Shown here in pieces: positions 1,790 to 61,961 of a DNA stretch of 64,000 bases; position 1 is the first letter of the stretch; every line of letters starts with the position of its first letter. The notes beneath the pieces were generated by a model. It was given only the letters and a program-made list of their open reading frames with translations. It was not told the DNA's origin and did no database searches. The position numbers and the translations under genes are program-made. Location of the stretch: positions 253,494 through 317,493 of the IMG/VR virus record IMGVR_UViG_3300037882_001770. One strand, 5' to 3'.

Positions 1790-1909
1790 ATGTTAGATAC
1801 ATTATTTTGGATAGCGATAGGAGCATTTGTAGGTTGGAATTTTCCACAACCGTTTTGGGCTAGAATGATTCAGGAAAAAATCAAAGCAATGGTTAGTAAG
1901 GAAAAATAA
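1790..1909 (+). CDS. Small membrane protein (39 aa, not in ORF track)
   Basis: AGGAG RBS; MLDTLFWIAIGAFVGWNFPQPFWARMIQEKIKAMVSKEK; fills the intergenic gap. Confidence 0.6.
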   Translation: MLDTLFWIAIGAFVGWNFPQPFWARMIQEKIKAMVSKEK

Positions 1910-2218: not shown

Positions 2219-3007
2219 ATGACCAATCATTATCAAACTCTAGGCGTTGACCGCAGCGCTTCCCCAGATGAAATTAAACGAGCTTATCGAAAGTTGGCCA
2301 GCCAGCATCACCCCGACAAAGGTGGTGACACTAAAAAATTTCAAGAAATACAAACAGCATATGATGTACTAAGTGACCCGCAGAAAAAGTCTGCCTATGA
2401 TAATCCTGCAGCCCAGACTTTTTCTGGGTTCGGTAATCAACCATTTGATTTTGATACTATTTTTGACATATTCGGTGCTAGATTTAATCATCCACATCAA
2501 CAACCACGTGGGCGCACACAGGCACGCATGAGTCTATGGATTACTCTATTAGACGCGGTGCAGGGCGGGAGACGTACTATCAGTATCGGCACTCAGCAAG
2601 GAACCCAGGCAGTAGAAATAGAAATTCCAATTGGGATCAATGACAGTGACTCTGTACAATATTCTGGTATTGCGCCAGGTGGTGGCGACTTGATAATAAC
2701 GTATCGCATACATAACAATCCTAAATGGCAACGCCAGGGATCTAATCTCATAACCGAACAAATGATCACTATCTGGGATTGCATACTAGGTGGTCAGACC
2801 ATGTTGCGAGATATCGAAGGCAATCAATTAAACTTAACAGTTCCAGCAAGAACTCAGCCCGGCACAATGCTACGACTTCGTGGTCGCGGAATTCCACAGA
2901 GGCAAGGACCAACTGGAGATCTTTTGGTTAAAATTGTTGCACACATACCTGACCAAATTGACCCTGAATTGCTGACTATGATTGAGCAAACTGGCAATAA
3001 AAACTAA
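2219..3007 (+). CDS. dnaJ: DnaJ/CbpA-type co-chaperone (no zinc finger)
   Basis: J-domain with HPD (HHPDKGG), G/F linker, C-terminal LRLRGRG...GDL domain. Confidence 0.9.
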   Translation: MTNHYQTLGVDRSASPDEIKRAYRKLASQHHPDKGGDTKKFQEIQTAYDVLSDPQKKSAYDNPAAQTFSGFGNQPFDFDTIFDIFGARFNHPHQQPRGRTQARMSLWITLLDAVQGGRRTISIGTQQGTQAVEIEIPIGINDSDSVQYSGIAPGGGDLIITYRIHNNPKWQRQGSNLITEQMITIWDCILGGQTMLRDIEGNQLNLTVPARTQPGTMLRLRGRGIPQRQGPTGDLLVKIVAHIPDQIDPELLTMIEQTGNKN

Positions 3008-3075: not shown

Positions 3076-5355
3076 ATGCAAAATAATCCCGAAATTGAAC
3101 AAATTATCGAATCTGCGGTCCGCATTGCAAAAGATAAACAGCACGAATACGTACTGACTGAACATGTGTTGCTGGCCATGTTGAAGTATGCGCCGTTTCG
3201 CAAAGTCTTGGCCAAGTATGGAACCACTGTGGATTTGTTTGAACAGGAATTAGAAAGTTATCTTGACAGCCTAGTTAATCTTGTCAAGGCAAATGCCAAC
3301 TTACAACCTAAAAAAACAAATGCACTCGAGCGTTGTTTCAACCGAGCTCTTACTCAGGTACTGTTCACTGGACGTAGAACAATTACCACAGCAGATTTAT
3401 ATCTGGCCATGATGAGTGAAACAAACAGTCATGCACACTATTTCTTGTTGAAGTATGGCGTAAAGAAAAACGAGTTTGTTGAGTTTTGGCAAAAACACTA
3501 CAATCACAATGATATTAAAATTACCGACCAACAGGCTGATGAAATTTTAACTGAGCACTGTACTGATTTAACCAAGATGGCGCATGAAAATCAACTTGAG
3601 CCAATGATTGGTCGCAGTAGTGAACTAGATGAAATGATCACAGTGCTGGCTCGCAAGTTCAAAGCCAACGTGCTTATGGTTGGAGATCCCGGAGTAGGCA
3701 AGACAGCTATTGTAGAAGGCCTAGCCCAGGAAATCAATGCAGGACGTGTTCCTGAGTTTCTTAAAGGCTACGAAGTGTGGGGGCTCGAAATTGGCAGCTT
3801 GCTTGCTGGTTCAAAATATCGCGGCGAGTTTGAAGAAAAATTCAAACAAGTTATTAGTGCGTTAGAAGCCAAGAAAAATTGCATCTTGTTTATTGATGAG
3901 GCGCACACTATGAAAGGTGCTGGCAGTTCTAGCAACAGCACACTTGATTTTGCAAACATGTTAAAACCGGCCATCACCAAGGGCAATTTAAAGGTGGTAG
4001 CCAGTACTACCTGGGAAGAATTTTACGAATCGTTTGAAAAAGATCGTGCATTGATGCGCCGTTTCCATCGCGTAAGCATCGACGAACCCAACGACGAAAC
4101 TACAGAACAGATTCTAATTGGACTTAGTCCACGTTTGGAATCATATCATAATGTGTTGATTGACACAGATGCTATGACAGCCGCTGTGGAATTAAGTCGA
4201 CGTTATATTCATGATCGTCAAAATCCAGACAAGAGTATCGACTTGTTAGACGGTGCCTGTGCTAAGGAACGTGTTAAAGATATGGGCACAGTGACTATTA
4301 CCAAGGACATGATCATGGCTCAGCTCAGTAGGATCACAAATGTTCCGTTGGATCGTTTACAAAACGAACGTTCGACTAAAATTGTTGATTTAGAAAGCAA
4401 CATCAAACAGAAATTATACGGACAAGATGCCGCAGTCGACGCAGTATTGGATCGTGTGTACATCAACTTCTCTGGTATCGGTAACCAAACACGCCCAATT
4501 GCTAGTTTCTTGTTTTTAGGACCAACAGGTACAGGTAAAACAGAGCTTGCCAAATTGTTAGCCGAAAACTTAGACATGCAGTTGTTGAAATACGATATGA
4601 GTGAATATCAAGAACGGCATACAGTATCAAGTTTGATTGGTGCACCCCCGGGCTATGTAGGATTTGATGATGGCAATCTAGGTGGCGGCAAACTAATCGC
4701 CGACATTAGTAAAAACCCATTTAGTATTGTGTTGTTTGATGAAATTGAAAAGGCGCATCCGGATGTGATCAATATCATGTTGCAGATGCTGGACGAAGCC
4801 AGACTTACCAGTAGTAATGGCAAAACTGTGAATCTCAAGAACTGCATTATCATTATGACCAGTAATTTAGGCGCCAAAGACAACGAAAGTAACAATATTG
4901 GATTTGCTCAAAGTTTAGAAAAATCAGGCGAAGAAAATCGTGCAATGAAAGAATTCTTCAAACCTGAGCTACGTAATCGTATTGATCAAATTTGCAAGTT
5001 TGTTAAATTGGACACATTGGCCATCAAGAAGATTGTGGTCAAGTTTACAGACCAGTTGCAATCCAGTCTTGCTGACAAGAACATCCGTCTCACTCTAAGC
5101 GAACCAGTGATTGATCTGTTGGCTGACAAAGGCTACGATAATAAAATGGGTGCAAGACCACTTAATCGCAAAATTGACGAATTGATACGAGTACCGTTGT
5201 CTAAGAAAATTTTGTTTGATCAATTGACCAACTGCAATATCCATGCAGTGATCAATGGTGATGCAATTGATTTTCAAATTACACCCATGGACGCTCAGCC
5301 CATAGTTGACAGTGAAGGATACATAGTTCTTGATCAATTCAAGCCCACAATCTAA
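3076..5355 (+). CDS. clpA: ClpA-like AAA+ unfoldase
   Basis: Clp N-domain (EHVLLA), two Walker A (GDPGVGKT, GPTGTGKT), Walker B (FIDEAH, FDEIEKAH), GAPPGYVG, IGF ClpP-docking loop; no ClpB middle domain. Confidence 0.9.
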   Translation: MQNNPEIEQIIESAVRIAKDKQHEYVLTEHVLLAMLKYAPFRKVLAKYGTTVDLFEQELESYLDSLVNLVKANANLQPKKTNALERCFNRALTQVLFTGRRTITTADLYLAMMSETNSHAHYFLLKYGVKKNEFVEFWQKHYNHNDIKITDQQADEILTEHCTDLTKMAHENQLEPMIGRSSELDEMITVLARKFKANVLMVGDPGVGKTAIVEGLAQEINAGRVPEFLKGYEVWGLEIGSLLAGSKYRGEFEEKFKQVISALEAKKNCILFIDEAHTMKGAGSSSNSTLDFANMLKPAITKGNLKVVASTTWEEFYESFEKDRALMRRFHRVSIDEPNDETTEQILIGLSPRLESYHNVLIDTDAMTAAVELSRRYIHDRQNPDKSIDLLDGACAKERVKDMGTVTITKDMIMAQLSRITNVPLDRLQNERSTKIVDLESNIKQKLYGQDAAVDAVLDRVYINFSGIGNQTRPIASFLFLGPTGTGKTELAKLLAENLDMQLLKYDMSEYQERHTVSSLIGAPPGYVGFDDGNLGGGKLIADISKNPFSIVLFDEIEKAHPDVINIMLQMLDEARLTSSNGKTVNLKNCIIIMTSNLGAKDNESNNIGFAQSLEKSGEENRAMKEFFKPELRNRIDQICKFVKLDTLAIKKIVVKFTDQLQSSLADKNIRLTLSEPVIDLLADKGYDNKMGARPLNRKIDELIRVPLSKKILFDQLTNCNIHAVINGDAIDFQITPMDAQPIVDSEGYIVLDQFKPTI

Positions 5356-7031: not shown

Positions 7032-7781
7032 ATGCGCACTATTGTAATATATCCAGGAAGATTTCACCCATTTCACCGAGGCCACAAGGCCAGCTACGAT
7101 TATCTTGTTCAGCAATTTGGTGCGGGCAATGTGTTTATTGCAACTAGCGATGTGCAGGCTCCTGTTACCAGTCCGTTCAGCTACAGCGACAAGGTAACTA
7201 TGATGTCTAAGTTAGGCGTACCCTCGGGCAGAATAGCGCGAGTCAAAAGCCCGTACCAGGCCACAGAAATTACCGGGCAAATTGATGACAAAGAGCACAC
7301 TGCCTTAATATTTGCTGTCAGTGAAAAGGACATGCAAGGCGACACAGCTAGATTTAAATTTGGCACAAAAAAGAATGGCGAGCCCAGTTACATGCAACCC
7401 ATGCCAGTGGCTGGTAAATTGCAACCAATGTCAAAACATGCGTATGTGATGATCACACCCACAGTCAATTTCAAAGTCAAAGGTGCCGACGCCAACAGTG
7501 CCAGTCAAATAAGAAAATTATATCTAGACGGAAACGACGCGGACCGCGATCAAATCATTGCAGATTTGTACGGAGAAGTTGAGCCACACATTCGAGATAT
7601 ATTTGATCAGCGGTTGGCAGTGACACAAAATACACAAAATTTAGTTGCAGAAGCAAGAATTAAAAATCCTGGTCGTGCTGTAGCATTGTTAGAAGCCATA
7701 TCAAGGTTGGAAAAAACAGCCAATTATATCGAATTTGAAGACCTTAGTTTAGACTACATCAACGAAAAACTCAGCCGCTAA
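7032..7781 (+). CDS. HIGH-motif cytidyltransferase-like protein
   Basis: YPGRFHPFHRGH (HxGH) and SASQIR motifs. Confidence 0.7.
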   Translation: MRTIVIYPGRFHPFHRGHKASYDYLVQQFGAGNVFIATSDVQAPVTSPFSYSDKVTMMSKLGVPSGRIARVKSPYQATEITGQIDDKEHTALIFAVSEKDMQGDTARFKFGTKKNGEPSYMQPMPVAGKLQPMSKHAYVMITPTVNFKVKGADANSASQIRKLYLDGNDADRDQIIADLYGEVEPHIRDIFDQRLAVTQNTQNLVAEARIKNPGRAVALLEAISRLEKTANYIEFEDLSLDYINEKLSR

Positions 7782-59361: not shown

Positions 59362-60476
59362 TCAAACCCTTTTATGCCTACGGTTATTATCAAGTGGGCC
59401 ATAATGATTATGTCAAAAAGACCGACGCACTAGTTGCGGCTACAAAAAGTCGGTTGCCAGTACACTGGAACTTTCACGACGATGTTTATTCAGCAGCTGA
59501 TTGGACTCGGCGGCCAGCAGGCACTCTTAAAGACCTGTACCGCATCAGAGCACAACAACTGCGTGATCGTTACGACTATATTGTGATTCATTTCAGCGGT
59601 GGCGCAGACTCCTGGACTGTGCTCAACAGTTTTTTAAGCAACAACATACCGGTAGACGAAGTGTACACACGCTGGGCCAGAGCTGAACGCAAATACACAA
59701 AGGCCAATGCAGCAGATCGTAGAGAATGCAATTTAAGCAGTGAATACGAGTATGCCACCGAGCCAGTATTAAAAGAAATACAAAAGAAATTCCCCAATAC
59801 TCGCATACATGTGGATGATTATTCAGATGCTTACACAAAAGAAGTAAATGAAAAGACCTTAGAGACCAGCAGTCATTATATCACCATGGGCACCTTTCAT
59901 AGATTTACTAGAAAATCACCAGGTGAATTGGCTGCAGTGGCTGCCGGCAAACGTGTGGGAGTGATCTACGGTTTTGACAAGATACAGTGTAATCTAACAC
60001 AGGGCCGATTCAGTGCGTATTTTGTAGATCGTTTTGGCAGTACCGACATTGATCCTGAGCGCACACAGGAAGGATTTTATTGGACACCAGACCTGTCAGA
60101 AATTCCCATCATGCAGGCACATGATTTACGCTTGTATTATCAGACCATTGTGGATCGCGTACAGAGTCGACAACTGAACCCACGCGAATGCTTTATACGT
60201 ACCTGCTATGCCGATTACAATTTAAACACATTTCAAGTGGAAAAACCTCTGGGCAGCAAGGTCTGGGCCAGTGAACAGTGGATTCAAAAGTACAATCCAC
60301 GCTATGCAGAATCCTGGGAATGGGCCCTGGGTCAATATACCCACAACATTGACAATGCATATTATGAGTTTTTTGGCAACAAGATCAAACTGGGCTACAA
60401 GACCATGCGTAGTCCGCTGTACTATGTGGGGCCCATTGCAGGTGCAGAACAGTTGAATTTTGAGTTTTCACACTGA
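59358..60476 (+). CDS. PP-loop (adenine nucleotide alpha hydrolase-like) protein
   Basis: FSGGADS; LY..RA.QLR..YDYI shared with 51932-53116. Confidence 0.65.
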   Translation: MIKPFYAYGYYQVGHNDYVKKTDALVAATKSRLPVHWNFHDDVYSAADWTRRPAGTLKDLYRIRAQQLRDRYDYIVIHFSGGADSWTVLNSFLSNNIPVDEVYTRWARAERKYTKANAADRRECNLSSEYEYATEPVLKEIQKKFPNTRIHVDDYSDAYTKEVNEKTLETSSHYITMGTFHRFTRKSPGELAAVAAGKRVGVIYGFDKIQCNLTQGRFSAYFVDRFGSTDIDPERTQEGFYWTPDLSEIPIMQAHDLRLYYQTIVDRVQSRQLNPRECFIRTCYADYNLNTFQVEKPLGSKVWASEQWIQKYNPRYAESWEWALGQYTHNIDNAYYEFFGNKIKLGYKTMRSPLYYVGPIAGAEQLNFEFSH

Positions 60477-60502
60477 GTTTTTGTTATTGTATTAAATACA
60501 GT

Positions 60503-60673
60503 ATGGAACAGAACAAAAAACCCGTAGACAAGTTTTTTTACTCTGCCAAAGAGTGGGACCGTTTGGGCTGTGGCCCGTTGCCGACAGAACGTGATCGCGG
60601 TCAAATACATCAAGACGCTCATGCAAAAGGTAATCCTAAGATTGACGGCAAAGCTGTAAAAGGGTATAATTAA
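60503..60673 (+). CDS. Small hypothetical protein (56 aa, not in ORF track)
   Basis: ATG 4 nt after TAAATA; MEQNKKPVDKFFYSAKEWDRLGCGPLP... Confidence 0.5.
   Translation: MEQNKKPVDKFFYSAKEWDRLGCGPLPTERDRGQIHQDAHAKGNPKIDGKAVKGYN
60642..60670 (+). promoter_or_regulatory. Sigma70-like promoter for tmRNA
   Basis: TTGACG-N17-TATAAT. Confidence 0.65.
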
Positions 60674-60748
60674 CTTAGTTTTGCATTTTGATCAAAATGC
60701 ATGGTGGGTCGGACTGTTAGAATGTAGTAGTAAAGAATTGTTGTAATT

Positions 60749-61095
60749 CCTTCGTAGTGAAGGCGTTGTGGACCCGGGTTCGATTCCCGGCAGGTCCACC
60801 ATAAGGAGATTGACATGGATCAAGAAGCTGTATTAGTAGTCGCATTTCTACTGATAGGACTATTGTTTGTCTTTTTATGATGGGCCTGACATGGTCTCGA
60901 CATGGCGAGATAGCGAAAGAGGCAACACAGTAGGCGATGACTGTAAATCAAGCAAATTATGTAAATGCAAAAACATCTACAGGCGAAACTACTGTATCAG
61001 GTAAGAACATCAAGTTCTCTGCTCGTACAGCACAACGCCAATCATTAGCAGTTTAATCACTGCTTAGGGTAATTATACCTCGTAACAGAAAATAG
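60749..61095 (+). ncRNA. ssrA: Permuted (two-piece) tmRNA; outer ends approximate
   Basis: T-arm CCGGG-TTCGATT-CCCGG and CAGGTCC-A-CCA (ends 60801) precede 5' strand GGGCCTG (60882); 7-bp acceptor stem with G3:U70; CATGGCG/CGTTGTG helix; tag frame 60967-61056 starts GCA and ends LAV-stop. Confidence 0.88.
60815..60880 (+). CDS. 21-aa hydrophobic peptide ORF in tmRNA intervening segment
   Basis: TAAGGAG SD; MDQEAVLVVAFLLIGLLFVFL. Confidence 0.45.
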   Translation: MDQEAVLVVAFLLIGLLFVFL

Positions 61096-61096
61096 T

Positions 61097-61123
61097 AGAA
61101 CCCGCTTCGGCGGGTTTCTTTTT
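61097..61123 (+). terminator. Intrinsic terminator after tmRNA
   Basis: AACCCGC-TTCG-GCGGGTT plus T-tract. Confidence 0.85.
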
Positions 61124-61154
61124 GGCAAATTAAAATATCATGGTAAGTAAACGC

Positions 61155-61961
61155 ATGATCGATATTATTACTGTTGTGTTTCGAGAAGAATTGGATGTAT
61201 TACGATTGCAGGCCCGCAGCATCGAACTGTATTGTCACAGTGCCGATTTGGGTCGTATATATGTTGTGGTCAATGATGCCACCGTAGACACCAGTGAAAT
61301 TGATTTGGCCTGGTGGGGCACTTTACGTGATCGGGTCACAGTGGTGCATAGGGCTGCTTGGCCCGTGGCGTATGCAGAAAATGGCTGGCTAACACAACAG
61401 CTATTAAAGTTAATGGCCACTGAATTATGCACCAGTACTTGGAGCATGGTATTGGATGCCAAAACTATATTTGTTAAACCTGTTGCACCTGTAGCCGATT
61501 GCCCCGTGGTGGGCATATTGGATATCTATCCGGTGTTTGATGTAAGTCGCCAACGTGTAAATGAGTTGTTTGGCGTAGAATTAACTCAGCAATTAGGACC
61601 CGGCGGTGTGCCTTTTATTTTGAATAATGCGTTGACTCTCGAATTAATGAGTGAAGTTGCTGTGAGAACCAACCAATCATTTGATCAATGGTTTCAAGCG
61701 CAAGGAATGGTGACAGAATTTATTCTTTATTCTGGATATGTGCTTTACAAGTTTGGGTCATTTGATGTCATTTACAACACCGACGATATTGCTGTTAAAC
61801 CTTGTAATCTGTGTCACAGCGAAGTGGCCAGTTTTGGACGCAAGTTTGCAGAGATGCAGCACAGTACCACAGTCAGTGTACATCGACGTGCTTGGGAACA
61901 ACTGACGTCACAACAACAACACACCTATACACAATTTCTCGCGGCCAGAGGCATCGAATGA
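61155..61961 (+). CDS. Glycosyltransferase-like protein (DUF6492-like)
   Basis: GWLTQQLLKL, VLDAK, TEFILY motifs. Confidence 0.55.
   Translation: MIDIITVVFREELDVLRLQARSIELYCHSADLGRIYVVVNDATVDTSEIDLAWWGTLRDRVTVVHRAAWPVAYAENGWLTQQLLKLMATELCTSTWSMVLDAKTIFVKPVAPVADCPVVGILDIYPVFDVSRQRVNELFGVELTQQLGPGGVPFILNNALTLELMSEVAVRTNQSFDQWFQAQGMVTEFILYSGYVLYKFGSFDVIYNTDDIAVKPCNLCHSEVASFGRKFAEMQHSTTVSVHRRAWEQLTSQQQHTYTQFLAARGIE

Follow-up and report, generated by a model that had tools for sequence, protein, structure and literature searches.

A probable membrane-peptide gene in the intervening segment of a phage two-piece tmRNA gene

Few RNA genes are as well catalogued as those of tmRNA, and in the permuted form the spacer between the two pieces has so far been treated as disposable. 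In the phage tmRNA gene described here this spacer, the intervening segment (IVS), is almost filled by a short open reading frame, which raises the question of whether a peptide is encoded there and, if so, whether it belongs to the tmRNA gene or is a passenger within it. The DNA analysed, referred to as the window, is the final 64 kb of a 317-kb IMG/VR virus record, that of a jumbo phage, with a completeness estimate of 89%.

The sole RNA gene reported by ARAGORN in the window is a permuted tmRNA at 60709-61147 (+) with a 29-residue tag, and it matches the Rfam families RF04321 (118 bits, cut-off 47) and RF01850 (112 bits, cut-off 84). In both analyses the acceptor (3' tRNA-like) piece lies upstream of the coding piece, and the gene is a member of the beta-type two-piece (permuted) tmRNA family, described by Keiler (2000) and Sharkady and Williams (2004) as cited in PMC9004378. 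The acceptor piece occupies 60709-60801 (+; ARAGORN, the RF04321 and RF01850 alignments, and sequence), and within it the T-arm (60774-60790), the 3' acceptor strand CAGGTCC (60791-60797) and an encoded ACCA tail (60798-60801) can be read from the sequence, all on the + strand. The coding piece (60882-61056, +; ARAGORN, Rfam) opens with the 5' acceptor strand GGGCCTG (60882-60888, +; sequence reading), which forms a 7-bp acceptor stem with CAGGTCC; the G3.U70 pair of this stem and the encoded ACCA make up the alanine identity feature. The mature ends of the tmRNA, 60801 and 60882, are predicted positions. The tag frame (60967-61056, +) begins at an alanine resume codon, GCA at 60967, and ARAGORN gives it 29 residues with the hydrophobic end LAV. 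This length is unusual, and the end is LAV in place of LAA; the tag of a relative, L006 (11342-11434), is similarly long, and other relatives have either the classic 10-residue ANDxxYALAA or other long tags of 24-28 residues.

A putative promoter-like site, TTGACG-17-TATAAT, lies upstream of the gene (60642-60670, +; 11/12 matches in a consensus scan), and relatives often have a sigma-70-like site that ends 9-10 nt 5' of the acceptor piece. By our own reading, an extended -10 element, TGTTAGAAT (60715-60723, +), is an alternative putative promoter. The unit is closed by an intrinsic terminator at about 61098-61125 (+), found by scan as an 8-bp GC-rich stem with a T run, and metatranscriptome contigs from relatives end at the position equivalent to 61124 of the window. 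A gene for SmpB was not found in the 317-kb phage record, and the phage tmRNA is therefore presumed to use SmpB of the host. A 56-residue ORF (60503-60673, +) ends just 5' of the tmRNA gene and overlaps the promoter-like site; by eye only, a stretch EWDR..G.G..P is common to it and an open frame of the L004 IVS (3850-3950, −; 99 nt), where AGAGGAG stands directly 3' of the CCA and is followed by no canonical start codon.

The IVS of the window, predicted to be removed in maturation, is the 80 nt between the encoded CCA and the 5' acceptor strand (60802-60881, +), and it can be aligned with the IVSs of 76 unique relatives. It begins, directly 3' of the ACCA, with a Shine-Dalgarno sequence (SD), TAAGGAG (60802-60808, +), and 6 nt further on is the start of a 21-codon ORF (60815-60880, +; ATG 60815-60817) with the translation MDQEAVLVVAFLLIGLLFVFL, a short acidic N-terminus followed by one hydrophobic helix. 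The stop codon TGA (60878-60880) is separated by a single nucleotide, T 60881, from the predicted mature 5' end at 60882. The first-pass annotation of this DNA had described these elements from the letters alone, namely a strong SD right after the CCA, a 21-codon ORF that nearly fills the segment, and a stop 1 nt before the mature end, and all of them were found as it had described them. The same architecture occurs in L113, L014, L024, L032, L094 and L097, and L113 is the only true twin (80-nt IVS, 21 codons, same SD and stop).

In the minimum free energy (MFE) fold of the precursor, 60800-60810 pairs with 60869-60879 and continues the acceptor helix. A single continuous helix is predicted, made up of the acceptor stem, the ACCA tail paired with the leader TGAT (60878-60881, +; with a conserved C74.A-2 mismatch), and a 10-bp terminal stem of the IVS that is conserved in register among the relatives. 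The 5' strand of this stem (60802-60811, +) contains the SD, and the 3' strand (60868-60877, +), which is U-rich and places G.U pairs opposite the SD, also encodes the C-terminal residues of the peptide. MFE folding places the SD in a duplex whether the IVS is folded alone or within the precursor, and in the precursor the start codon sits at the loop edge. The folds agree with the earlier proposal that the two ends of the segment pair and would hide the SD in the folded precursor. The leader TGAT gives both the stop codon of the ORF and the U found at -1 relative to the predicted site of RNase P cleavage.

The end pairing extends across the family. Ten bp link positions i and -(i+4) in the 76 unique complete phage IVSs; each of the ten pairs is formed in 89-99% of these IVSs, and AT, TA, GC, CG and GU pair types are all seen among them. 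The tail also covaries with the last four bases of the leader (ACCA/TGAT, ACCG/CGTT, ACCC/GGGT), which indicates that the tail pairs with the leader in the precursor, and that the CCA must be added or repaired after trimming where the tail is not CCA. Tails other than CCA among these IVSs (loci L008-L130) are ACCG, ACCC, ACCT and, once, AAAA. The conserved and ancestral feature is thus the end pairing, and the TGA that ends the ORF belongs to a leader present with or without an ORF.

Relatives were collected in several scans. The first, an IMG/VR pattern scan with the acceptor piece and with no selection on IVS content, gave 79 loci of the same tmRNA family; a further 44, on viral and metagenome contigs, came from two more scans in which AAGGA was required 3' of the CCA. 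In bacterial genomes the hits were Rhodocyclaceae-type genes from Dechloromonas, Azonexus, Thauera, Accumulibacter and others, and representative loci were confirmed as permuted tmRNA genes with ARAGORN and Rfam. The window gene shares with the betaproteobacterial two-piece tmRNA the acceptor-first order, G3.U70, the T-arm, the tag frame and the continuation of the acceptor helix into a stem of the IVS, and the AAGG...CTT stem of the IVS is common to the phage genes and those of the Rhodocyclaceae. The difference lies in the IVS itself: in the bacteria it is a non-coding hairpin of 23-48 nt that starts with AAGG, ends with CTTxGGT and is too short to code, whereas the window and its ORF-bearing phage relatives have 80-279 nt with an SD-led ORF. 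Phage IVSs as a whole range from 26 to 279 nt, and in these copies the loop has grown relative to the bacterial hairpins.

The first-pass annotation had proposed a dual-function transcript in which translation competes with tmRNA processing, or a small toxin or regulator released from the excised piece, and had held that homologues which keep the pairing and lack the ORF or SD would count against it. Such homologues are the majority: 42 of the 54 unique relatives from the unselected scan have the pairing without SD or ORF. L006 is one of these, the only complete tmRNA locus to which the neighbouring gene led (52% identity at the protein level); the stem is present in its IVS of 98 nt and SD and ORF are absent, despite the neighbour gene and long tag that it has in common with the window. 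Since most relatives keep the stem without the ORF, the window ORF is an accessory cargo and not an integral, conserved component with a part in tmRNA function. The comparison of ORF, SD and dN/dS among homologues that the annotation had suggested gave a divided answer, as sister ORFs in the same place are selected (dN/dS 0.14-0.17, detailed below) and the larger group has retained the pairing only.

An ORF that most relatives lack could be a chance ORF, with the IVS serving as a structured spacer for processing and the peptide never being made in this phage. When the loop was shuffled with both stem strands fixed, an SD-ATG ORF filling the IVS arose in 1007 of 20000 shuffles (5%), and the presence of the ORF, taken alone, is barely beyond chance. 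Comparison with L113 shows no measurable purifying selection, although the dN/dS of ~1.1 is saturated, as the two ORFs are too diverged; the similarity of the two peptides was reached in 0/5000 full shuffles, and is marginal (P=0.046) when the N-terminal, membrane-spanning and stem-coded segments are shuffled separately. Cultured phages are also consistent with a plain spacer: Stenotrophomonas phage Marzo (L251), Xanthomonas phage XacN1 (L252) and Pseudomonas phage UF_RH6 (L253) have beta-type permuted tmRNA genes, and their IVSs are structured, 57-114 nt long and without an ORF. These are all the cultured phages found with such a gene, so no culturable model of an ORF-bearing IVS was found. 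In XacN1 and UF_RH6 the permuted tmRNA genes are unannotated.

It is the content of the ORF that speaks against chance. T occupies 71% of the second codon positions, compared with 29% of the first and 24% of the third, and the maximum hydropathy over 15 residues is 3.34, as against 1.08 +/- 0.58 in the shuffled ORFs that remained open (P=0.0002). This in-frame hydrophobicity is not chance, and it upholds the earlier description of the product as a peptide like a single transmembrane segment. The ribosome-binding site is at canonical spacing (TAAGGAG-N6-ATG), and AAGGAG is a plausible ribosome-binding site in this phage, in whose genome a start codon follows 3-10 nt downstream at 55 of 83 occurrences. 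Across the family, an SD-ATG ORF fills the loop in 12 of the 54 unique IVSs from the unselected scan; among IVSs of at least 75 nt this is 12 of 22, where loop shuffles lead to an expectation of 0.36. Together with the purifying selection on sister families in the same slot, these results make a chance ORF unlikely, and the segment to be excised very probably contains, in the window ORF, a real gene for a small membrane peptide. Membrane insertion is the sole property of the peptide that its sequence supports.

The 12 ORFs fall into about seven unrelated ORF types, the members of each being phylogenetically related, and thus represent about seven independent events. With at least seven unrelated ORF types found in it overall, the slot looks like a cargo site. 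When the selected scans are included, one cargo family has an acidic N-terminus and one helix in 23-24 codons (L014, L024, L032, L094, L097); a Trp-rich family of the MFENWHWQYLWGIA... type includes L017, L082, L092, L108, L075, L055, L095, L110, L111 and L115; and singleton ORFs have 23-84 codons. Most cargo consists of one hydrophobic helix and some is soluble-looking, with 21-84 codons overall. Pfam and PHROG scans of ten longer cargo proteins gave nothing over the curated cut-offs. A protein search with the Trp-rich family returned 8 clusters, all of the same kind, and tblastn of this family against cultured phages gave no match. IVSs with and without an ORF intermingle in a tree built from the mature tmRNA parts, whose sequences are too short and conserved to order gains and losses. 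One contig, L128, has two permuted tmRNA genes (65-513 and 7114-7471) with an array of 11 tRNA genes between them; one of the two has an ORF-bearing IVS and the other is a shorter gene.

The three cargo groups that could be aligned are under purifying selection. Pooled pairwise dN/dS in frame is 0.14 (FamA), 0.17 (FamB1) and 0.15 (FamB2), compared with 0.46-11 in the other frames, and variable columns are distributed 20/6/33 over codon positions 1/2/3 (p=9e-5). Stems of ORF-bearing IVSs have fewer G-C pairs, and more of the G.U type, than those of ORF-less ones and are weaker (-6.1 vs -8.8 kcal/mol, p=1.6e-8), although the requirement for AAGGA in the second scans may account for part of the contrast. 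Three solutions to the ending of the ORF were seen: the leader TGA, as in the window; a stop just 5' of the 3' stem strand; and no stop before the junction. The last is found in the Trp-rich and a few other ORFs, which are read on for 27-75 nt beyond the junction into the coding piece, in either of two frames and to variable stops. Processing would make non-stop messages of the Trp-rich ORFs, as these have no stop before the predicted RNase P site.

This arrangement invites two readings in which translation acts on the tmRNA itself. The IVS ORF could be a leader-like device, in which ribosome traffic tunes precursor folding and RNase P processing and the peptide is irrelevant; the position of the SD inside the processing helix, the window stop 1 nt from the predicted cleavage site, and the FamB ORFs that run past the junction in two frames would all suit such a role. 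A peptide of no consequence is hard to reconcile with dN/dS values of ~0.15, which indicate amino-acid sequences conserved within families, with cargo that extends from 21 to 84 codons and includes soluble-looking proteins, or with the existence of one cargo family also as a free-standing gene, and we consider this reading very unlikely. A further reading, which we also regard as rather improbable, is that the precursor is a true bifunctional messenger with coupled peptide output and maturation. In the window, termination and cleavage would then compete on each molecule, owing to the 1-nt distance between the stop and the RNase P site; in the Trp-rich family (L017, L055 and relatives), cleavage would turn the cargo mRNA into a non-stop message, and the peptide would be tagged by the very tmRNA that is released. 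If so, the locus would hold a built-in sensor or feedback loop for trans-translation capacity in infection.

The cargo family with a free-standing form is the 39-residue IVS ORF of L118 and L128, which shares 62% identity (E 1e-18) with a gene that stands alone elsewhere in the window (1790-1909, +), and a free-standing homologue is also present in the Pelagibacter phage Mosig. The same small genes can therefore live inside or outside the slot, and this homology is the clearest sign that the IVS is a slot into which ordinary small phage genes move. In the window, the gene at 1790-1909 lies directly 3' of a holin-like gene (1322-1777; phrog_3427, E 6e-7), and directly after this 39-residue membrane-type gene is one for an 83-residue protein with a signal-peptide-like N-terminus (1911-2162); the genes at 1322-2162 may be a lysis cassette. 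Further along, a 262-residue ORF (2219-3007, +) has a J-domain-like start with an HPD motif, which hints, from the translation, at a DnaJ-like co-chaperone encoded by the phage.

Type I toxin mRNAs (hok, ldr, ibs, tisB) encode hydrophobic peptides of <60 residues from an SD masked by long-range 5'-3' pairing, and in hok-type mRNAs in particular the window finds a likeness: a 21-residue peptide with a single hydrophobic helix, and an SD that is paired with the other end of the segment in the MFE fold, as a prediction only. The peptide could thus be a type-I-toxin-like or lysis-related killer, silenced by the end pairing until release or trimming of the IVS activates it, and the holin-like neighbour of the L118-type homologue adds to this picture. 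That adjacency is, however, not repeated in phage Mosig, the window ORF itself sits in the tmRNA gene, outside any lysis cassette, and the ten longer IVS cargo proteins scanned had no match to any toxin or lysis family in Pfam or PHROG. The context also differs, being a stable-RNA precursor. A defining feature of type I systems is an antisense RNA antitoxin, and no such partner was found here: in a weak test, minus-strand promoter-like sites were sought within 60300-61300 and occurred only at 60660 and 60388, with none near the IVS. Moreover, trimming of a released IVS from its 3' end would be expected to destroy the stop codon and the end of the reading frame first, and to free the SD only afterwards. 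A killer peptide of this kind seems improbable on these grounds.

RNA evidence for the precursor comes from a relative. In L117 (locus of 3.9 kb) the CCA ends at 2387, the IVS is at 2388-2525 and the ORF at 2397-2510, and a 257-nt contig from a freshwater metatranscriptome corresponds to L117 2359-2615 with no mismatches. It runs from the T-arm through the CCA and the complete IVS, ORF included, and on over 90 nt of the coding piece, and indicates that the unprocessed, ORF-bearing precursor exists as RNA in this relative; the rest of the locus is uncovered, and the absence of the flanks makes DNA carry-over unlikely. The window phage itself was absent from the RNA runs searched, in which the best share of its sampled words was 0.30 and only conserved parts of relatives were recovered.

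The explanation that we favour, with modest confidence, is that the processing hairpin carries small genes for membrane proteins in its loop and that the precursor serves as their mRNA, with the phage IVS as an accessory slot on the tmRNA unit. The IVS would be the loop of a long processing helix consisting of the 7-bp acceptor stem, ACCA:TGAT and the 10-bp IVS stem. In one clade of freshwater phages, all uncultured, this loop, which is tiny in bacteria, would have lengthened and come to receive small accessory genes, chiefly for single-helix membrane peptides, that are transcribed with the tmRNA. The ancestral purine-rich 5' strand of the stem (AAGG...) would have been turned into an SD, and the window cargo, a 21-residue peptide, would have its start codon just inside the loop and use the conserved leader TGA as its stop.

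Ribosomes would load on the nascent or unfolded precursor, before or while the weakened stem forms. The SD is transcribed ~60 nt ahead of its pairing partner, and this interval would let ribosomes bind while the precursor is still being made, or else when the stem breathes. During termination on the leader TGA, a ribosome should sit over both the 5' acceptor strand and the predicted RNase P site, and translation and maturation would consequently exclude one another on each molecule; both co-transcriptional loading and this exclusion of RNase P are suggested by the geometry of the locus. After termination the helix would fold, the SD would be masked and the tmRNA would mature, the peptide most likely acting at the host membrane. 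The 3' trimming of CCA-encoding bacterial tRNAs is exonucleolytic. Were the acceptor 3' end of the tmRNA made in this way, the IVS would be destroyed and not released, which favours translation from the precursor over release from an excised piece.

Several known systems resemble this arrangement in part. Dual-function RNAs such as RNAIII/delta-haemolysin, SgrS/SgrT and SR1/SR1P likewise give, from a single transcript, a functional RNA and a small, sometimes membrane-active peptide. Their ORF is within the mature functional RNA, whereas that of the phage is in the discarded part, so that processing would separate RNA function from coding. The group I introns with homing-endonuclease genes that sit in the tmRNA T-loop (PMC11915505) are also protein genes nested in a tmRNA gene and removed at the RNA level; they differ in being self-splicing and mobile and in encoding a large endonuclease, whereas the phage IVS has neither intron nor endonuclease and is predicted to be removed by tRNA-processing enzymes.

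A further parallel is with the IVSs of 23S rRNA (S23p of Coxiella burnetii, and those of Leptospira; PMC4990558), in which an ORF lies in a helix-bounded segment cut from a stable-RNA precursor. The window IVS can be described in the same terms, its excision being expected from tmRNA biology. It is not homologous to these selfish elements of >400 nt in rRNA, and S23p, according to PMC4990558, is apparently not made in vivo and has no ribosome-binding site of its own. The phage tmRNA IVS ORFs differ in that they have strong SDs, are mostly of 21-60 codons and diverse, and include several under purifying selection. The 2025 tmRNA database paper describes only tRNA-Ala and a repeat element inside IVSs, and no protein ORFs (PMC11915505), and IVS ORFs likewise go unmentioned in the paper on the two-piece tmRNA of phage Melnitz. 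The literature searched, coverage of which was incomplete, contained no account of a protein ORF in a tmRNA IVS.

If phages routinely express small membrane proteins from the tmRNA spacer, annotation pipelines would be missing a class of phage micro-proteins, as tmRNA loci are masked and ORFs of <30 codons are dropped. The window would then represent a compact natural design, with the SD in the processing helix and the stop provided by the RNase P leader, and could be used to study how ribosomes and RNA-processing enzymes compete. It would also add a route by which accessory genes can ride on the strong promoter of a stable RNA, and the spacer peptides may point to unknown interactions between phage and host at the membrane.
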